The notes under the pieces are model-generated. The model did no database searches, was not told where the DNA came from, and saw only the letters and a program-made list of their open reading frames with translations. The translations under genes were made by a program, and so were the position numbers. From assembly GCF_000315625.1 (NCBI RefSeq), contig NW_005434650.1:697303-761302 (forward strand): 64,000 nt of DNA, read 5' to 3'. Positions 1-9,200 of the stretch are shown here, in pieces. The stretch comes from Guillardia theta CCMP2712 (lineage: Eukaryota; Protista; Cryptophyta). Within the stretch, counting starts at the first letter, position 1, and the number at the start of each line of letters is the position of its first letter.

Positions 1-2560
1 TCATCGAAGGTCAGCGAGTCACCGTGTCGCCGTCTTTACTGCGCGCGACGATCCCTGCAGTCGAGAAGGGAGGGGACGGTAGCAACAGAGGGAGATGGGG
101 GGAGGCAGGACAGGGAAGCCAGAGAAGAGAGGAAGGAGACGGGGTAGGAAAAAAGGGTGAGGAAGGGAAGGAAGTGAGAGGGAGCAGAGGGAGGGAGACG
201 GAGGGAGAGGGAGCAGAGGGAGGGAAGTTACGCACGAGGTTCTCCTGCGATCTCTCGCACGAGTAAAGTTTCGTCTTGCTCTCCAAGTCCCACACGATCG
301 CAGCTGATGACAGAAGTCTCACCTCCTCTGTACAGCTGATCCTCCTCTCTCCTCTTCCTTCCACCTCTTCCCTACACCCACCCTCCTCGAGAACTCTCTC
401 TCCTCCTCTCCTTCCGTCGCATCCTCCCCCTCTCCTCGCTCGCCTCTCCTCACCTCCCCTTTCGTCGGTGCTGATCAGGATCTGAGCGTCTCTGCAGAGC
501 TCTAGGCTGAGGATGCGACCCTCGTGCGCCCTGAATGTATGCATGGCGTTCACCGTCCCCTCGCTGCCAGCCTGTGGAGTCTTCAGGGCGAGAGGGAGGA
601 GGAGGAGAGGAGCAAGAATTGGGGGGGCGGGGTGTGTGCAAGATGAAGATACGAGGGACGGAGTGATGGAGCAGGAGGAGCAGGAGAAGGCATTACAGAA
701 AAAGGGGAGTGAATGTAGAAGAGAGATGAAGGAATTCCGAGGGAGAGGAGGAGGAAGTGTGAAGGGAAAAGAAGGAAGGGAGGGAGAGGGGAGGAGGGGA
801 GGGAAGCAAGTAAGAACGGAGGGGGAGGAGGAGTGGAGGGACCTTGTAAAGTCTGACGGTCTTGTCTGAATGCCCAGTGACGATCAGGGACTTGGAGAAG
901 GAAACTTTCATCGCGCGGATGGGAGCGAAACAATTTATGCTCCTGGAAGAGGGGAGGAGAGAGAGAGGGGAGGGGAGGAGGAGTGACAGTGAGGTGGGCA
1001 CAAAGGTCAGAGAAAAGACGGAAAAGGAGGAAGGAGCAAGAAACGCAGGAAGAAGGAGGGGAAAGAGTTTAGAGGACAAACCCAAAGAGGGAGGAGGACT
1101 AGAAGTAGCGGAGAGAAACAATTGGAGGGTGCGAAGGGGGTTCTATGAGGGTGAGCGAGAAGGGGGGAGGGGGGTTCTAAGAGGGTGAGCGAGAAGGGGG
1201 GGAGGGGGGTTGGAAGCAGAAGCACCTCAACATCTTTCCTGACGCAGCATCCCATACGATGAGCATGCAGTCGTCGGACGCCTGTAGAGTTGTCAAAGTC
1301 TTTTTCCTCCTTAGTTTGACCTCTCACGCTGTAAAGCTCCTTGTCATCCCCGGCCACTGACCTCACGACACCTGTCAAACCCTTAGCTGCTGCCCTCTAG
1401 ACGCACAACCAGATTCCCTTTTCTCCTCCTCCTCCTCCTCCTCCTCCTCCTCCCTCCCTCCCTCCCTCCCTCCCTCCCTCCCTCCCTCCCTCCTTCCTCT
1501 TTCATCCCCTCTCTCCTCCGCTTTTTTCTCCTCCTTGTCATCTTCTTCTCACTCGTGTGGCCGCCCAGGGTCTTCAGCAGCGTCCCGCTGGCAAGTTCCC
1601 ACACCTTGAAGGCTCCATCGAATCCTGAGGCAGCAAAGATTTACCTTCACCTTTTCCTCTACCCCTCTCCTCACATTGCTTTCCCATACTTCTTCCTCCC
1701 ACTCTTCCCCTTCCCTCCTCTCTCCTCCCCTCATCCCTTGCCGCCTCCCAACTCGCCGACATACCTCCAGACAGCAGCTTGTCTTTGGTGACAAACACGC
1801 TAGACACAGCGTTTCTATGCGCTTCAATCGAAGTTTGCCTCAGGTACCCCTCCTTCCACCCCTTCCGGACCTGGTCCAATGCCCTCCTGCGCACCTCCGC
1901 AACTCTCTCCTCCTCCTCGTCTTCGGCCGACTTTCTCTTCTCCTCTTTCGCCTTGCTCGCTTCAACGACGTGTTTCACATCCTGCGAGCTTGTCTGCTCT
2001 GCCTCCTCCTCCCCCTTCGCCTCCTCCTGAGATTCTGTACGAAAATATCAGTAGGTTGACCCAAGAAAGGAAGTATTTCGCAAACCTTGCAAGAGCTGAC
2101 CCAACCTCTGAATCCTCGAGACTTCGATCCTGGCAGAGAAATGTTTCTTCATGGAGGGGACTTGCTTCCTTCCTCTTCCCTTCACTACCCATCCATCGTC
2201 ATCGTTCCCCTCCTGTTCCCCGGGATCAAAAGAGTCTGCGTTGAAAGCGTGTTCTTCCGCAGTATCAGCGTCCTCTTCCTGAGGAGCGTCTTCTGTCGGG
2301 AGCGAGACGCCAGCATCTTCATGGACTTCTCTGTGAGCTTGCGAGCTGTCTTCATCGGGAGACTCCCCATCCTCAGCATTGAGGATCGATTCAAGCTCGA
2401 ACAGGTTTCTTCGGAACTCTTCTTCAGACGCGATTTTGATCTCCTGCTCCTCTAGCAGCCTCTGCCCACTCTGCTTCATGACCTTCAATGTCTCTATCTG
2501 CCTCAGCTTCTTCCGCAGGGTGCGCGCCTTCTTCGACATGGCCAACATAGTCTCCACCAT
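1..2560 (-). CDS. WD40-repeat protein with N-terminal PYM/eIF2A-like coiled-coil (multi-exon; 3' end runs off the window)
   Basis: Exon fragments: KKARTLRKKLRQIETLK..GQRLLEEQEIKIASEEE (2048-2560); IEAHRNAVSSVFVTKDKLLSG; KVWELASGTLLKTLGGHT; VVRSVAGDDKELYS; LIVTGHSDKTVRLY; HTFRAHEGRILSLELCRDAQILIST; AIVWDLESKT. The fragments are separated by GT-AG introns filled with purine/pyrimidine microsatellites. Confidence 0.8.
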
Positions 2561-3439: not shown

Positions 3440-5061
3440 ATGGATGCCCCTAGCGGAACCTACGAGTGGGATATCTTTCTTAGCTTTCGAAGGTGTTGGT
3501 GAGATTTCCTGCTGCAAGTTATGAACTCCTGTCGCAGGACAGGATACAACAAAGAGGAGGAGATCGCAGAACGGATATATGAAGAGCTGACGGTAATGAG
3601 AGGAGGAGAGTTTCCTCTCTTGTTTGTTCTGATGCCAAAGAGCAGAGGAAGGGGCTCCGAGTGTTTCACGTGCCCCGATGCCTGGGGGAGCGGGAGGACA
3701 GGCATGGGAGAGACTGGGACAGGAAATATCTGAAAGCTCTTGCGAACTCACTCGTCGTCGTGCTGCTGATAACGCGAGAGACGTTCACAGGAAGAGAATT
3801 CGACATGAAGAAGTACGTCTGGAGCTCGAAGCAAGACGAGCTGCTAATGGAGTGGGAACTTGTGCTAGAGCTGTACGATCGGGGGAGGACGAGGGAGATT
3901 CTCCCGTGCCTCATTGGTGAGTTCTGTTGGGAGGGCTGCTGGGCATGATGGCTGTGCGTGCAGGCGACCTGACGACTCTGAAGAAGCAGAAGGCAATGAG
4001 CAGGATCGTCGACCGTCTCGGGCTGAAGAACTTGGACGAGAGGGCTATGATAGCCAGGATGCGGGAGCTGTTCAACTACGTGGATCGGGACGGGTCGGGT
4101 TTCATAGATGAGGAGGAGCTGCTGGAGGCTTTCACCAAGTTCGGGGTTGAGATCTCAAGGGAGGAGCTGTCGGAGAGGCTTCAGGAGGTGGACGATGGGA
4201 ACTGCAAGCTAGACGTGTTCGAGTTTGAGGACCTCCTCTTTGCTGTGCTTGAGGACAAGGCGGGAATATTCTTCGATGGGAGGAGGGAGAAGGGCGGCAG
4301 GAAGAAGCAGCAGCCTCCTGCTTCCTCCTCTTGCCCCGAGGAGGACGATGACGAAGAGATCTTCACTAACTTTGAGGAGTCCCGCTGCATGCCTCCGCTC
4401 CCCAACATCACCTCCCTCCAGTCCTCTCGGCGAGTCGTAAGCTGGCTGCACACCTTCCTCAAGTACAAGGAGGGGGTCGTCCTCTGGCGAGCTCCCCACT
4501 GCCGCCCCCTCCCCACGGTGGACAACGTGGAGGGAGGACGGACCATCAGGCAGACAGTGGATGCGATCGTTGGGTTCAAGAAGTACCTCGTGCAAGGCAG
4601 GAAGCAAGTCGCTTTGCAGTTCCTCGACAAGTATGTCTACGACGAGTTCGTCTCCTCTATCAACCTCTCAAGGGTGGAGGGGGAGGACGCCGCGTCCTCC
4701 CTTGCCGCCATGACGGGCAGGAGCAGGTGCGCAGTCACGGGACAGAGAGCCTCGTTGCGCGACCCCATCACGTCGCAGCTAGTGAGAGACATGAAGGTCC
4801 TGAAGATCATCAGGAAACAGTACTTCTTCAACAGTAAGAGCTGCTCCCCCTCAGTCCTCGTGGAGGAGGACGGGACCAGGATCACCTGCGCTGGGTCGGG
4901 GGGGGAGAGCGTCCTCCTCGACCCTCCCATCGCATCCTCAGGAGTCTCCTATGTGGACCTACAGCTCCAGAACATCGGTCAGGTCCCCTACATGTACGTC
5001 GGCATCTGCTCGCCGATTGTCAACAGCACGGGAGAATGGAGCGGTAAATGTTGCTTTCGTA

Positions 5062-5116
<55 letters not shown>

Positions 5117-5795
5117 TTCCCATCTCTCCTGCTCTCTCCTCTCGTCCCCTTCCTTATTCCTTCTCCTCACTTGCCACCCAATCGCCCTCCTGAAGCCTCC
5201 AACAGCTCTTCTCGACGAGAGCTCAAAACTTCTCGCGCTGCAGGACGGCAGCAAACTAGAGGGAGGAGAGAGGCAGGCGTTCCTGCATATCAAGGTGAAG
5301 GCCTATGATCGTGTGTCCGTCCTAGTGGACATGGACAAGGAGACATGCGAGATCTTCCTAAACGACAAGTTCCTCGGCGTCCTCTGCACGCGCATCGACC
5401 GGCCCTCCTACTTCGTTGTCACCCTCGGCTGGCCGCGGCAGAGGGTTGAGATCATGCGCAAGCAGTACGGATGTTGCTACGGTGTGTTGCAAGGGGGATG
5501 ATGATATTGTTCCAGGTACCTGCTCACTCTCGCAAAGCAAGTCAGGTCACCGTTCCTCGCCCTGTCTAAGGAGGAGGTACAGGAGAAGATCCGTTCTATC
5601 TTCCTTAGAGGAAGCGTCTCCTTACATCACAGCATGACGTACGAGGCCCTGAGAGAGCTGCTCAGCCTGCAGTTCGGCGTTCAGCTGAGCAACCTCGAGC
5701 TGCGAGATGTGATCTCGGAAGTCGATAGCGACAGAGATGGGAATATCAGCCTCGACGAGTTCGAAGCTTTCATACTTTACCTCTCATCACTGTAG
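3440..5795 (+). CDS. TIR-domain protein with EF-hands, YL1-C-like motif and SPRY/B30.2 domain
   Basis: Manual splicing (introns ~3493-3537, 3593-3645, 3917-3963, ~5044-5206, ~5466-5516) gives MDAPSGTYEWDIFLSFRRTGYNKEEEIAERIYEELTRKGLRVFHVPRCL..DWDRKYLKALANSLVVVLLITRETF..QDELLMEWELVLELYDRGRTREILPCLIGD (TIR). It continues with EF loop DRDGSGFIDEEE, CAVTGQRASLRDPITSQLVRDMKVLKIIR (YL1-C), YMYVGIC..YDRVSVLVDMDKETCEIFLNDKFLG (SPRY) and a C-terminal EF loop DSDRDGNISLDE. Stop TAG at 5793-5795. Confidence 0.8.
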
Positions 5796-6239: not shown

Positions 6240-9200
6240 ATGAACATTTTCGTCGTCGTCGCTGTTGCGCTGAACGCAGTCAGCATGGCTTCGGCTTCTA
6301 CTGTGAGGGTGGAGCTGTCACAAGAGTCTTCGTCGGCCACTATCAGCAACGGCTTCGTGAAATTTTCTGTGTCGACGGGACATCATGATTCTGACCATCA
6401 GAACTTCGGCCTACTGAGGTTGGGGCTCCTCCCTCTTCCTCCTCTTCCGCGCTGTTCATCGTCCCCCTCGTCCTCGTCCTCGTCTTTGTCGTCCTCTTCG
6501 TCTTGGTCCTCTTCCTTGTCCTTGTCCTCGTCGTCCTCTTCGTCTTGGTCCTCGTCCTCTCCTCGTCCTCCTCCCCATTCTCCTCGTCCCGTTATCCTCT
6601 TTTTGTTTTTGACTTTGGCGTCTTGCAGCATCTTTTCCGACTCCTCGGGTGAAGGGAATTTCGCGGGAAAGAGCAGCCTGCTAGCTCGTCCGCTGAGACC
6701 TCTGGTGTACTGGAGCAGGTCGATCATGATGGAGTACGTCAGGCCGCAGAAAAACTTGCAGATCAGTAGGGGGAACGATGGGAGCGAGGCTGTGACGATG
6801 ATGTTTCTTGCGTCGAATACTGTTGATGGCTACAACCTGACGATTTCTGTAATTATCACATGTCCCTTGTAGCTTGACCTTCTGTTCTCATGCTACGACA
6901 TAGATCCTCGTTTGCACTCTTACACTCCTCCCTCCTCCTCTTCCTCCCTCCTCCTCTTTCCTCCCTCCTCCTCTTGCTCCCTAGCTCCTTACTCCCTCCC
7001 TTCCTGGCTCTTCTTCCCTGACTTGACTTCGGGCAGATGTCCTGGAGGTTCTCCCTAGCTCCTCGCTCCCGTCACATCCAGTTCCAGTCTCGGGGAGACG
7101 CCGACGTGCGCGTGCGAGGGTTCTTGTTCGATGTCAAGCTCAGGCCCATCAGCATCACCGGGGTCTACTCAGGTGGGATCAGGGCAGATGCTAGGGTTGG
7201 TCACTGGGGCAGACAGGAGGGATCGAACAGATGATGCAGCAGAACGACTGGCAAGCGTATTTCCCGTCCAGTGATGACCTGTTGGAGGTGTTTGCGGCAG
7301 GTGAAGAGAGGCTGGGAAGGAAGCAGGATGGACTGGATAGATGAGAAAGGGAGTCAGAAGGGGAGGAGGGGGAGGAGGGGAGGAGACTTGAGAGGAGAGG
7401 AGAGGAGAGGAGAGGAGAGGAGAGGAGAGAAAGGAGAGGAGAGGAGAGGAGAGGAGAGGAGAGGAACAGGCTGGANNNNNNNNNNNNNNNNNNNNNNNNN
7501 NNNNNNNNNNNNNNNNNNNNNNNNNNNNNNNNNNNNNNNNNNNNNNNNNNNNNNNNNNNNNNNNNNNNNNNNNNNCAGAGCAGAGCAGAGCAGAGCAGAA
7601 CGCAGAGCAGAACGCAGAGCAGAGAAGAGAAGAGAAGAGAAGAGAAGAGAAGAGAAGAGAAGAGAAGAGAAGAGCAGAGCAGAGCAGAGCAGAGCAGAGC
7701 AGAGCAGAGGAGACTTACCGCGTGACGCCCAAATAAGACCTGAAAGAGAAAGTGAGAGGGGTAAAAGAGAAAGAAGAGGAGGAAGGGCAGAGAGCGAANN
7801 NNNNNNNNNNNNNNNNNNNNNNNNNNNNNNNNNNNNNNNNNNNNNNNNNNNNNNNNNNNNNNNNNNNNNNNNNNNNNNNNNNNNNNNNNNNNNNNNNNAG
7901 GAGAGGAGAGGAGAGGAGGGAGGAGGGGAGGAGACTTGAGAGGAGAGGAGAGGAGAGGAGAGGAGAGGAGAGGAGAGGAGAGGAGAGGAGAGGAGAGGAG
8001 AGGAGAGGAGAGGAACAGGCTGGAGAGGAGAGGAGATGAGGAGGGGAGAGGAGAGAGGAGGAGAGGAGAGGAACAGGCTGGAGAGGAGAGGAGAGGAACA
8101 AGCTGAGGAGGAGTGGGTTGGAGAGGAGAGAGAGGAGGTGTGTTCCAATCACACTCATCTGCTTCCCGCAGGACCGAAAGATTTCGGTTGCATCGAGATT
8201 ATCAGAGAATCATCTCTACGTGTGAGAGAAGGTCGGCATGTCAAGGTTTCACTTGTCCTCCTCATGGTCAAGGGCAGGAGACGCCTCCAACTTCTCCACC
8301 TGCCTGTTCTCCTCCACAGGAGCGACAGGACTGCAGGAGATTGTCGTCGGGCGGTTGAGGTAGCGGCGGGTTCCTCGAAGACTCGCTGGATGACGTCATA
8401 GCAGGTCTATGGATCGTTGGGGAAGTTGCGATGTTGTGGGAGAAGATTTTGTCTGCAGCCAACCTCCCTGCTCCACTGTCTTCTCTCATTCTTGGCTGGT
8501 CTATCCCAACGATCTCAGCTTTCCTGTCTCTCCTGTACTGGACCATCTGAGGAGGACGGAGGAAGTCCACGGCTTCGTGGAGTTTGAAGACAACGAGTTC
8601 TCCACACTTTCTTCTCGTGAACTCTCTACCGCTGCAATCAGCATCTACACAAACTTGATCGGGATTCTCAACACTCATCGAGGTTGTCGAAATGTTTGTA
8701 ATACTAGCATGACAAGGACTGACTGCCAGCAGGAACCATCGTTGATGGTGAGCAGATCGATCAGATTGCAACAGGGATCAAACACCCTGACCGGGGATAT
8801 CACGACATGTTCAACTTCTTCGACCCTGACAGCTACTTCTCCATCCAGGTTTGTGAGATGATGATGTCTGCGGTGAATGCACACATGGCAGGCCCTGCTG
8901 TTGTCAGGCAGTCGATACGTTCACGAACAAGTCCGCAGGGTGATTGAGAGAAGGAAAGAAAGCGTTTGCTAGACGTCAGAGAGTGAGTTAGTGCTTACAG
9001 CGGTTCTTGCATCTGCACGAATTCCACGCAAGAATGCTCGAAAGGACAAGTAAGATGTGGGAGAGAGGGAGAGAGAGAGGGAGAGGGGGGGGAAGAAAGG
9101 GAGAGAGGGATAGAGCAGAGCAAAGGAAGGGAGAGAGGGGGAGAAGGAGATGGAGAGAAGGAGGAAGAGGGAGGGAGACGTAGACGGAGATGGAGATGGA

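Follow-up and report, generated by a model that had tools for sequence, protein, structure and literature searches.

Enzymatically active TIR domains are known to be switched by kinases that act in trans or by domains that flank them (ARM/SAM, NB-ARC or nucleotide sensors), and the literature we searched describes no TIR whose own fold contains the sensor. A locus in the cryptophyte Guillardia theta raises the question of whether such an arrangement exists and, if so, whether it places a TIR enzyme under direct Ca2+ control. A preliminary description of a 64,000-nucleotide stretch of contig NW_005434650.1 (hereafter the window) proposed that a TIR domain split by small introns carries an inserted EF-hand pair and is followed by a SPRY domain and a second EF-hand lobe.

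The gene, GUITHDRAFT_137268 (UniProt L1JHD9), occupies positions 3440-5795 (+) of the window in six exons that encode 665 residues, and its introns (45, 53, 47, 162 and 51 nt) are all GT-AG (Table 1). A database search with the long open frame returned a single protein, P0001, which derives from an MMETSP transcript and constitutes the transcript support for the gene. In an exon-by-exon comparison, the translations of all six exons equal the 665 residues of P0001 with zero mismatches, and the junction codons agree. GUITHDRAFT_137268 is a transcribed, intact gene, and the intron-split TIR motifs quoted in the preliminary description are all present in the exons of this one transcript protein. 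P0001 clusters with GUITHDRAFT_137268/L1JHD9, for which existing annotation offers only "hypothetical" or "EF-hand protein".

Two introns merit comment. Intron 1 has two donors, one at 3493 that is used in the transcript and one at 3499, 6 nt downstream, that is used in the public gene model and adds two residues in the AA loop. Intron 4 (5044-5205) includes a 6-nt repeat that reads as poly-Leu; because this intron is in frame and free of stops, the raw open reading frame 3927-5501 displays a false transmembrane stretch within the SPRY domain, and intron retention would insert 54 residues, mostly hydrophobic. On either side of the gene, a divergent, intron-rich gene on the minus strand (window 1-2560) starts ~880 nt upstream and contains fragments that look like WD40 by eye, with nothing convincing in Pfam searches of its single ORFs, and a plus-strand ORF downstream (6240-6872 onward) begins with a signal-peptide-like stretch and has zero Pfam matches.

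Table 1. Predicted features of GUITHDRAFT_137268. Positions refer to the window and residue numbers to the 665-residue protein.
Feature	Residues (aa)	Position	Strand	Remarks
Whole gene		3440..5795	+	Split TIR with inserted EF lobe, YL1_C-like motif, SPRY, second EF lobe
Exon 1		3440-3492	+	Start codon; TIR betaA (aa 10-15); conserved Ser15 and Arg17; Phe16 versus Tyr of relatives
Exon 2		3538-3592	+	TIR alphaA
Exon 3		3646-3916	+	TIR betaB to betaD; BB loop with Val45 for conserved Asp and 5-residue insertion; TIR_2 E 0.005
Exon 4		3964-5043	+	
Exon 5		5206-5464	+	
Exon 6		5516-5795	+	
Catalytic-position Glu of alphaC	105	3850..3852	+	GAG; invariant in orthologues and 97 uninterrupted relatives
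Insertion in betaD-alphaD loop	128-256	3966..4352	+	Strand, helix 132-144, EF-hand lobe 152-226, disordered linker 227-256
EF loop 1	167-178	4083..4118	+	Canonical; ligand positions invariant across all orthologues
EF loop 2	203-213	4191..4223	+	11 residues, non-canonical; canonical 12-residue loop in Rhodomonas orthologue and P0035
C-terminal TIR part	257-359	4353..4661	+	alphaD helices, clade-specific conserved motif 299-313, betaE 334-336, alphaE 340-359
YL1_C (Vps72/Ies6-type) motif	380-410	4722..4814	+	Profile and Pfam evidence
SPRY/B30.2	413-572	4821..5462	+	Split by intron 5044-5205
Second EF-hand lobe	590-663	5565..5786	+	First loop degenerate in G. theta; second loop canonical (5724-5759, aa 643-654)

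Sequence comparison and structure prediction together confirm that the EF-hand lobe sits within the TIR domain, the fold being completed only after the lobe. Pairwise BLAST of P0001 against the stand-alone TIR P0049 aligned residues 2-129 with 17-147 (E 3e-14) and residues 252-353 with 150-251 (E 2e-12); these segments are collinear, and the gap on the P0049 side amounts to two residues. A profile of the N-terminal half of the TIR retrieved 1,507 relatives, with uninterrupted TIRs making up most of the best 150. When the 125 residues after betaD were taken from 97 uninterrupted TIRs, leaving out the orthologues of the G. theta protein, the resulting profile matched P0001 at 240-351 (E 2.6e-8), scoring 20 bits where 2000 shuffles gave 6.2 at most, and had no match at 129-165. 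The reciprocal profile search also matched P0049 across the full length, at 9 residues after betaD (E 8e-14).

An AlphaFold2 model of residues 1-362, built on a 97-row alignment (pLDDT 87.6, pTM 0.85), agrees with these comparisons. It predicts a five-stranded flavodoxin-like TIR fold from betaA to alphaE, in which betaE and alphaE lie beyond the EF lobe, and it superposes on the SARM1 TIR over 140 of 140 residues via model residues 9-356 (Z 13.5, rmsd 2.7). The alignment behind the model was steered by added C-terminal fragments because one MAFFT mode misplaces alphaD; the two profile tests and the BLAST comparison are independent of this steering, and every MAFFT mode places betaE and alphaE after the lobe. 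We rejected the placement of alphaD on residues 129-165 by that one mode, given that the post-betaD profile has no match there and that the P0049 alignment is collinear at 252-353. The pTM suggests a defined orientation of the lobe relative to the TIR. The preliminary description had guessed, from resemblance, that the segment after the EF-hands is the remainder of the TIR, and this guess is upheld by all five lines of evidence: two profiles, BLAST, the model and the SARM1 superposition. It was also right that a calmodulin-like lobe with a canonical loop follows betaD, although not directly, as ~24 residues (a strand and helix 132-144) intervene. Among other searches, a 4-row profile gave weak matches to a coronavirus polymerase and an integrin, which we took as chance, and ESM Atlas features for residues 1-350 yielded nothing.

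Exon-wise Pfam searches of the G. theta gene detected a weak TIR_2 match and two EF-hand lobes, the second of them where the preliminary description had expected one. Pfam barely recognizes the TIR because the EF lobe splits it, and this weak signal suggests that further split TIRs are being overlooked. Two of the four EF loops in G. theta are canonical (167-178 and 643-654), EF2 having 11 residues and EF3 being degenerate; among the orthologues, loop 3 is near-canonical and loop 2 is canonical in two and non-canonical in Teleaulax. In the predicted model, the first lobe most resembles centrin and troponin C (Z 9-10). In Teleaulax the YL1_C motif exceeds the Pfam cut-off (E 6e-6), whereas in G. 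theta it reaches no better than E 0.14. A profile of the orthologues matches Vps72 over this region (E 0.003). The same profile bears out the SPRY assignment, with matches to TRIM9 (E 2.5e-8), TRIM67 (E 1.3e-6) and RanBP9/10; Atlas matches were all SPRY.

A search for the same architecture in other proteomes, as had been suggested, found it in Teleaulax amphioxeia (P0003), in the Rhodomonas-type P0183/P0036, a full-length transcript-like contig identical to Rhodomonas salina across the overlap, and in several aquatic metagenomic lineages. The named hosts are cryptophytes only, the remaining orthologues being metagenomic. A midpoint-rooted tree of the N-terminal half, whose bootstrap values are rough, groups the split proteins as one clade (100/100) on a long stem (0.85 substitutions per site), amid uninterrupted TIRs near P0049. 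By descent, the protein belongs to the TIR fold and to a protist Roco-type TIR subfamily, and the simplest reading of the tree would be one insertion event in the cryptophyte ancestor. The intron positions do not support an origin of the insert by exon shuffling: in G. theta an intron lies at its 5' edge and none at its 3' edge, and Teleaulax lacks the 5' intron. P0049 (loci L030-L032) and the split orthologue P0183 (L035) come from the same sequencing run (SRR15274662), probably from one Rhodomonas-type organism, and form a natural control pair of uninterrupted and split TIRs.

The split-TIR gene is single copy in the G. theta genome, where at least 21 TIR_2 loci occur. Between orthologues, dN/dS is 0.05-0.16 for the EF lobe and both parts of the TIR; for SPRY it is 0.02-0.08. 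Judged by these ratios, the protein is a conserved signalling protein and not a diversifying receptor; neither the family expansion nor the fast-changing recognition domain of a diversifying immune receptor was found. The preliminary description had cast SPRY as a partner- or pathogen-recognition domain; the single copy and strong purifying selection argue against the pathogen role.

If the TIR domain is intact in fold, is it intact as an enzyme? The alphaC Glu that had been placed at codon 3850-3852 is indeed E105, in the catalytic position, and it is invariant together with D100, W106 and two motifs specific to the split clade (93-97 and 299-305). Its invariance is weak evidence of activity, however, because 24 of the 65 positions in 64-128 are invariant. 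In betaA, R17 is kept wherever the betaA of an orthologue is reliable, and S15 is replaced in a single orthologue. Other pocket positions have changed. The betaA Tyr (SARM1 Y568), present in 95 of 97 relatives, is Phe in G. theta and Teleaulax and Ser, Leu or Cys elsewhere. The betaB Asp (SARM1 D594), present in 96 of 97 relatives, is Val45 in G. theta and Ala, Pro, Gly or Glu in the orthologues, so that we do not class the protein as an established NADase. The BB-loop Gly (SARM1 G601, AbTir G174) persists as Gly57 in G. theta after a 5-residue insertion and is Ala, Asn, Val or Gln in the orthologues. Replacing this Gly in AbTir (G174A) leaves the enzyme nearly inactive. The SARM1 substitutions Y568A, D594A and G601P lower activity (PMC8266388). 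The aromatic residue of the WxxxE motif is absent, position 101 being Glu in G. theta and acidic in most orthologues. Over 19 columns that are at least 85% identical among the uninterrupted members, and whose consensus therefore rests on those members, three split proteins depart at 7, 7 and 10 (an end gap in the alignment accounts for one of these 10) and uninterrupted members at no more than 5; P0049 keeps all 19.

Uninterrupted members of the subfamily indicate which chemistry might be expected. According to Table S4 of a 154-TIR screen, G. theta L1IYH1 makes canonical cADPR and depletes NAD+ (bioRxiv 10.64898/2026.04.20.719644); its listed sequence is that of our locus L003, one of the two best in-genome matches to exon 3. 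Entries in that preprint also credit Salpingoeca rosetta F2UB80, of the same TIR subfamily, with canonical cADPR production and indicate that TIRs carrying the catalytic Glu can be inactive (bioRxiv 10.64898/2026.04.20.719644). Both active constructs, as given there, include the post-betaD segment, and a third member of the subfamily, truncated directly after betaD, showed no activity, an anecdotal observation (bioRxiv 10.64898/2026.04.20.719644). L1JHD9 itself was not found among the searchable supplement entries of the screen. Like the split protein, L1IYH1 and F2UB80 have a long alphaD region and the catalytic Glu and lack the WxxxE Trp (His in L1IYH1, Asn in F2UB80); unlike it, they carry an uninterrupted, C-terminal TIR that keeps the Tyr/Asp/Gly pocket residues, and L1IYH1 lies on a different branch of the N-half tree and is not sister to the split clade. 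Because two members without this Trp produce cADPR, its absence is not disqualifying, and we dropped the argument that it rules out cADPR. These two enzymes also make cADPR a plausible product class, as the preliminary description had proposed.

In SARM1 and AbTir, the EE surface supplies the adenine-binding half of a two-subunit TIR active site. This surface consists of betaD, betaE and alphaE and faces the BB loop of the neighboring subunit in active assemblies (PMC8635717). The insert departs from the end of betaD, which is part of this surface, beginning 2-3 residues past the position that corresponds, in our inferred register, to the adenine contact W227 of AbTir; both faces of the EE/BB-loop interface are remodelled in the split clade. 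The end of betaD thus appears to be a good place for a switch, and the effect of Ca2+ may go in either direction.

Our best reading, which we hold tentatively and place somewhat short of probable, is an ancient, single-copy cryptophyte enzyme acting on NAD+ or ADPR nucleotides, regulated by Ca2+ and equipped with a remodelled pocket. As sequence and model show, a TIR of the protist subfamily that occurs at the C-termini of Roco proteins gained an EF-hand lobe in its betaD-alphaD loop. On binding Ca2+ at its invariant EF1 loop, the lobe would move and so permit or block head-to-tail (BE) assembly, and assembly would in turn control Glu105-dependent chemistry on NAD+ or an ADP-ribose nucleotide. 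Given the remodelled pocket and BB loop, the protein may catalyze something other than the cADPR synthesis of its relatives, such as slow hydrolysis of NAD+ or the removal of cADPR. Drosophila Raw offers a precedent, as a TIR-fold cADPR hydrolase whose diverged pocket has two acidic residues and which acts on cADPR and not NAD+ (PMC13455253); it belongs to a separate two-TIR family, and we cite it as a lead only, claiming no homology. SPRY and the YL1_C-like motif most likely dock the protein on a fixed cellular partner. The invariant EF1 ligands and a lobe as conserved as the TIR in dN/dS favor this reading, and the lack of a SAM, NB-ARC or ROC oligomerizer in the protein counts against it. 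That the TIR is gated in cis, with the embedded lobe and Ca2+ switching production or removal of a cADPR-type messenger in one feedback loop, seems rather unlikely.

Two other readings concern what the TIR and its insert do. In one, which is quite possible though we doubt it, the TIR no longer turns over NAD+ and has become a pseudo-enzyme, serving with SPRY and YL1_C in a Ca2+ sensor-adaptor, as a Ca2+-regulated interaction surface or as a binder of ADPR or cADPR. The long, fully supported stem branch would fit such a change, as would the loss of the pocket Tyr, the betaB Asp and, mostly, the BB-loop Gly while the surface motifs 93-97 and 299-305 became invariant; the protein also has no oligomerization domain, and Glu-bearing TIRs can be inactive. 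It is harder to reconcile with the retention of the Glu, the Asp five residues before it and the betaA Ser and Arg in orthologues only ~50% identical, with Gly57 in the G. theta BB loop, or with Phe16, which is the plant-TIR residue. The other reading keeps an active TIR and treats the lobe as a tolerated passenger or structural module, Ca2+ control being exerted through the C-terminal lobe or absent. Inserts of 30-99 residues occur in the same loop in 10 of 89 uninterrupted relatives, so position alone proves no Ca2+ coupling, and EF2 is non-canonical in both G. theta and Teleaulax; the invariance of the EF1 ligands, a lobe conserved like the TIR and its defined orientation in the AlphaFold2 model make a passenger improbable.

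Taken to its full extent, the preliminary description goes further than our preferred reading of a Ca2+-regulated nucleotide enzyme: Ca2+ would activate a cADPR synthase, the two messengers would form a self-amplifying loop that serves immunity or cell death, and SPRY would recognize a pathogen. cADPR is a Ca2+-mobilizing messenger in animals, and members of the subfamily make its canonical form. The G. theta genome contains at least 11 IP3R/RyR-type channel loci and 3 TRPM-type SLOG loci (among them L055-L059 and L060-L062), candidate effectors for ADPR-type messengers. Set against this, the gene is single copy, its SPRY domain is under strong constraint, the pocket is remodelled, and a domain search of the genome, which gives a lower bound, detected no RyR repeat. 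We found no evidence of cADPR-triggered Ca2+ release in cryptophytes. A self-amplifying cADPR-Ca2+ loop is speculative, and the full immune version strikes us as very unlikely.

How does the protein compare with known TIR systems? SARM1 and Caenorhabditis elegans TIR-1 are its best structural match, with the betaA motif and catalytic Glu aligned, but SARM1, which lacks EF-hands, is regulated through its ARM (NMN/NAD+) and SAM domains, and the equivalents of Y568 and D594 are changed in the G. theta protein. By analogy, its mode of action would be that of a SARM1-type enzyme TIR whose sensor has been relocated to the interior of the fold. The plant TIRs RPP1, RUN1 and L7 share the multi-helix alphaD fold (Z 12.6-12.7) and the Phe of the betaA motif, whereas the split protein has neither NB-ARC/LRR nor the WxxxE Trp and bears its EF lobe before alphaD. 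P0049, which of the uninterrupted relatives comes closest when both halves are aligned pairwise, is an uncharacterized stand-alone protist TIR without insert or SPRY. Ca2+ control of TIR enzymes has been reported in trans, through phosphorylation of a conserved Ser by CPK or CAMK2D (bioRxiv 10.1101/2025.04.09.647920), and we found no other form described in the literature searched. Nor did that search, which covered few subscription journals, find a paper linking TIR and EF-hands with cryptophytes, SPRY or algae; the split-TIR/EF architecture is confirmed and, apparently, previously undescribed.

This architecture places an EF lobe beside the surface that completes a composite active site, in a subfamily with members that make cADPR. 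Direct Ca2+ control of a TIR can be tested on a fragment of 362 residues by established E. coli expression and LC-MS assays, with P0049 as a natural uninterrupted control, and if inactive the protein would still define a TIR pseudo-enzyme Ca2+ sensor.

Elsewhere in the G. theta genome, at least ten near-identical TIR_2 domains of a different TIR subfamily end open frames of ~1200-1370 aa (L004-L011, L013, L014). In L1IYH1 and a paralog (L039:524-4675, G000:C63; L002, G000:C33), both Roco proteins, a pair of EF-hands lies between ROC and COR, so that EF-hands are coupled to the subfamily of the split TIR a second time within the same genome.
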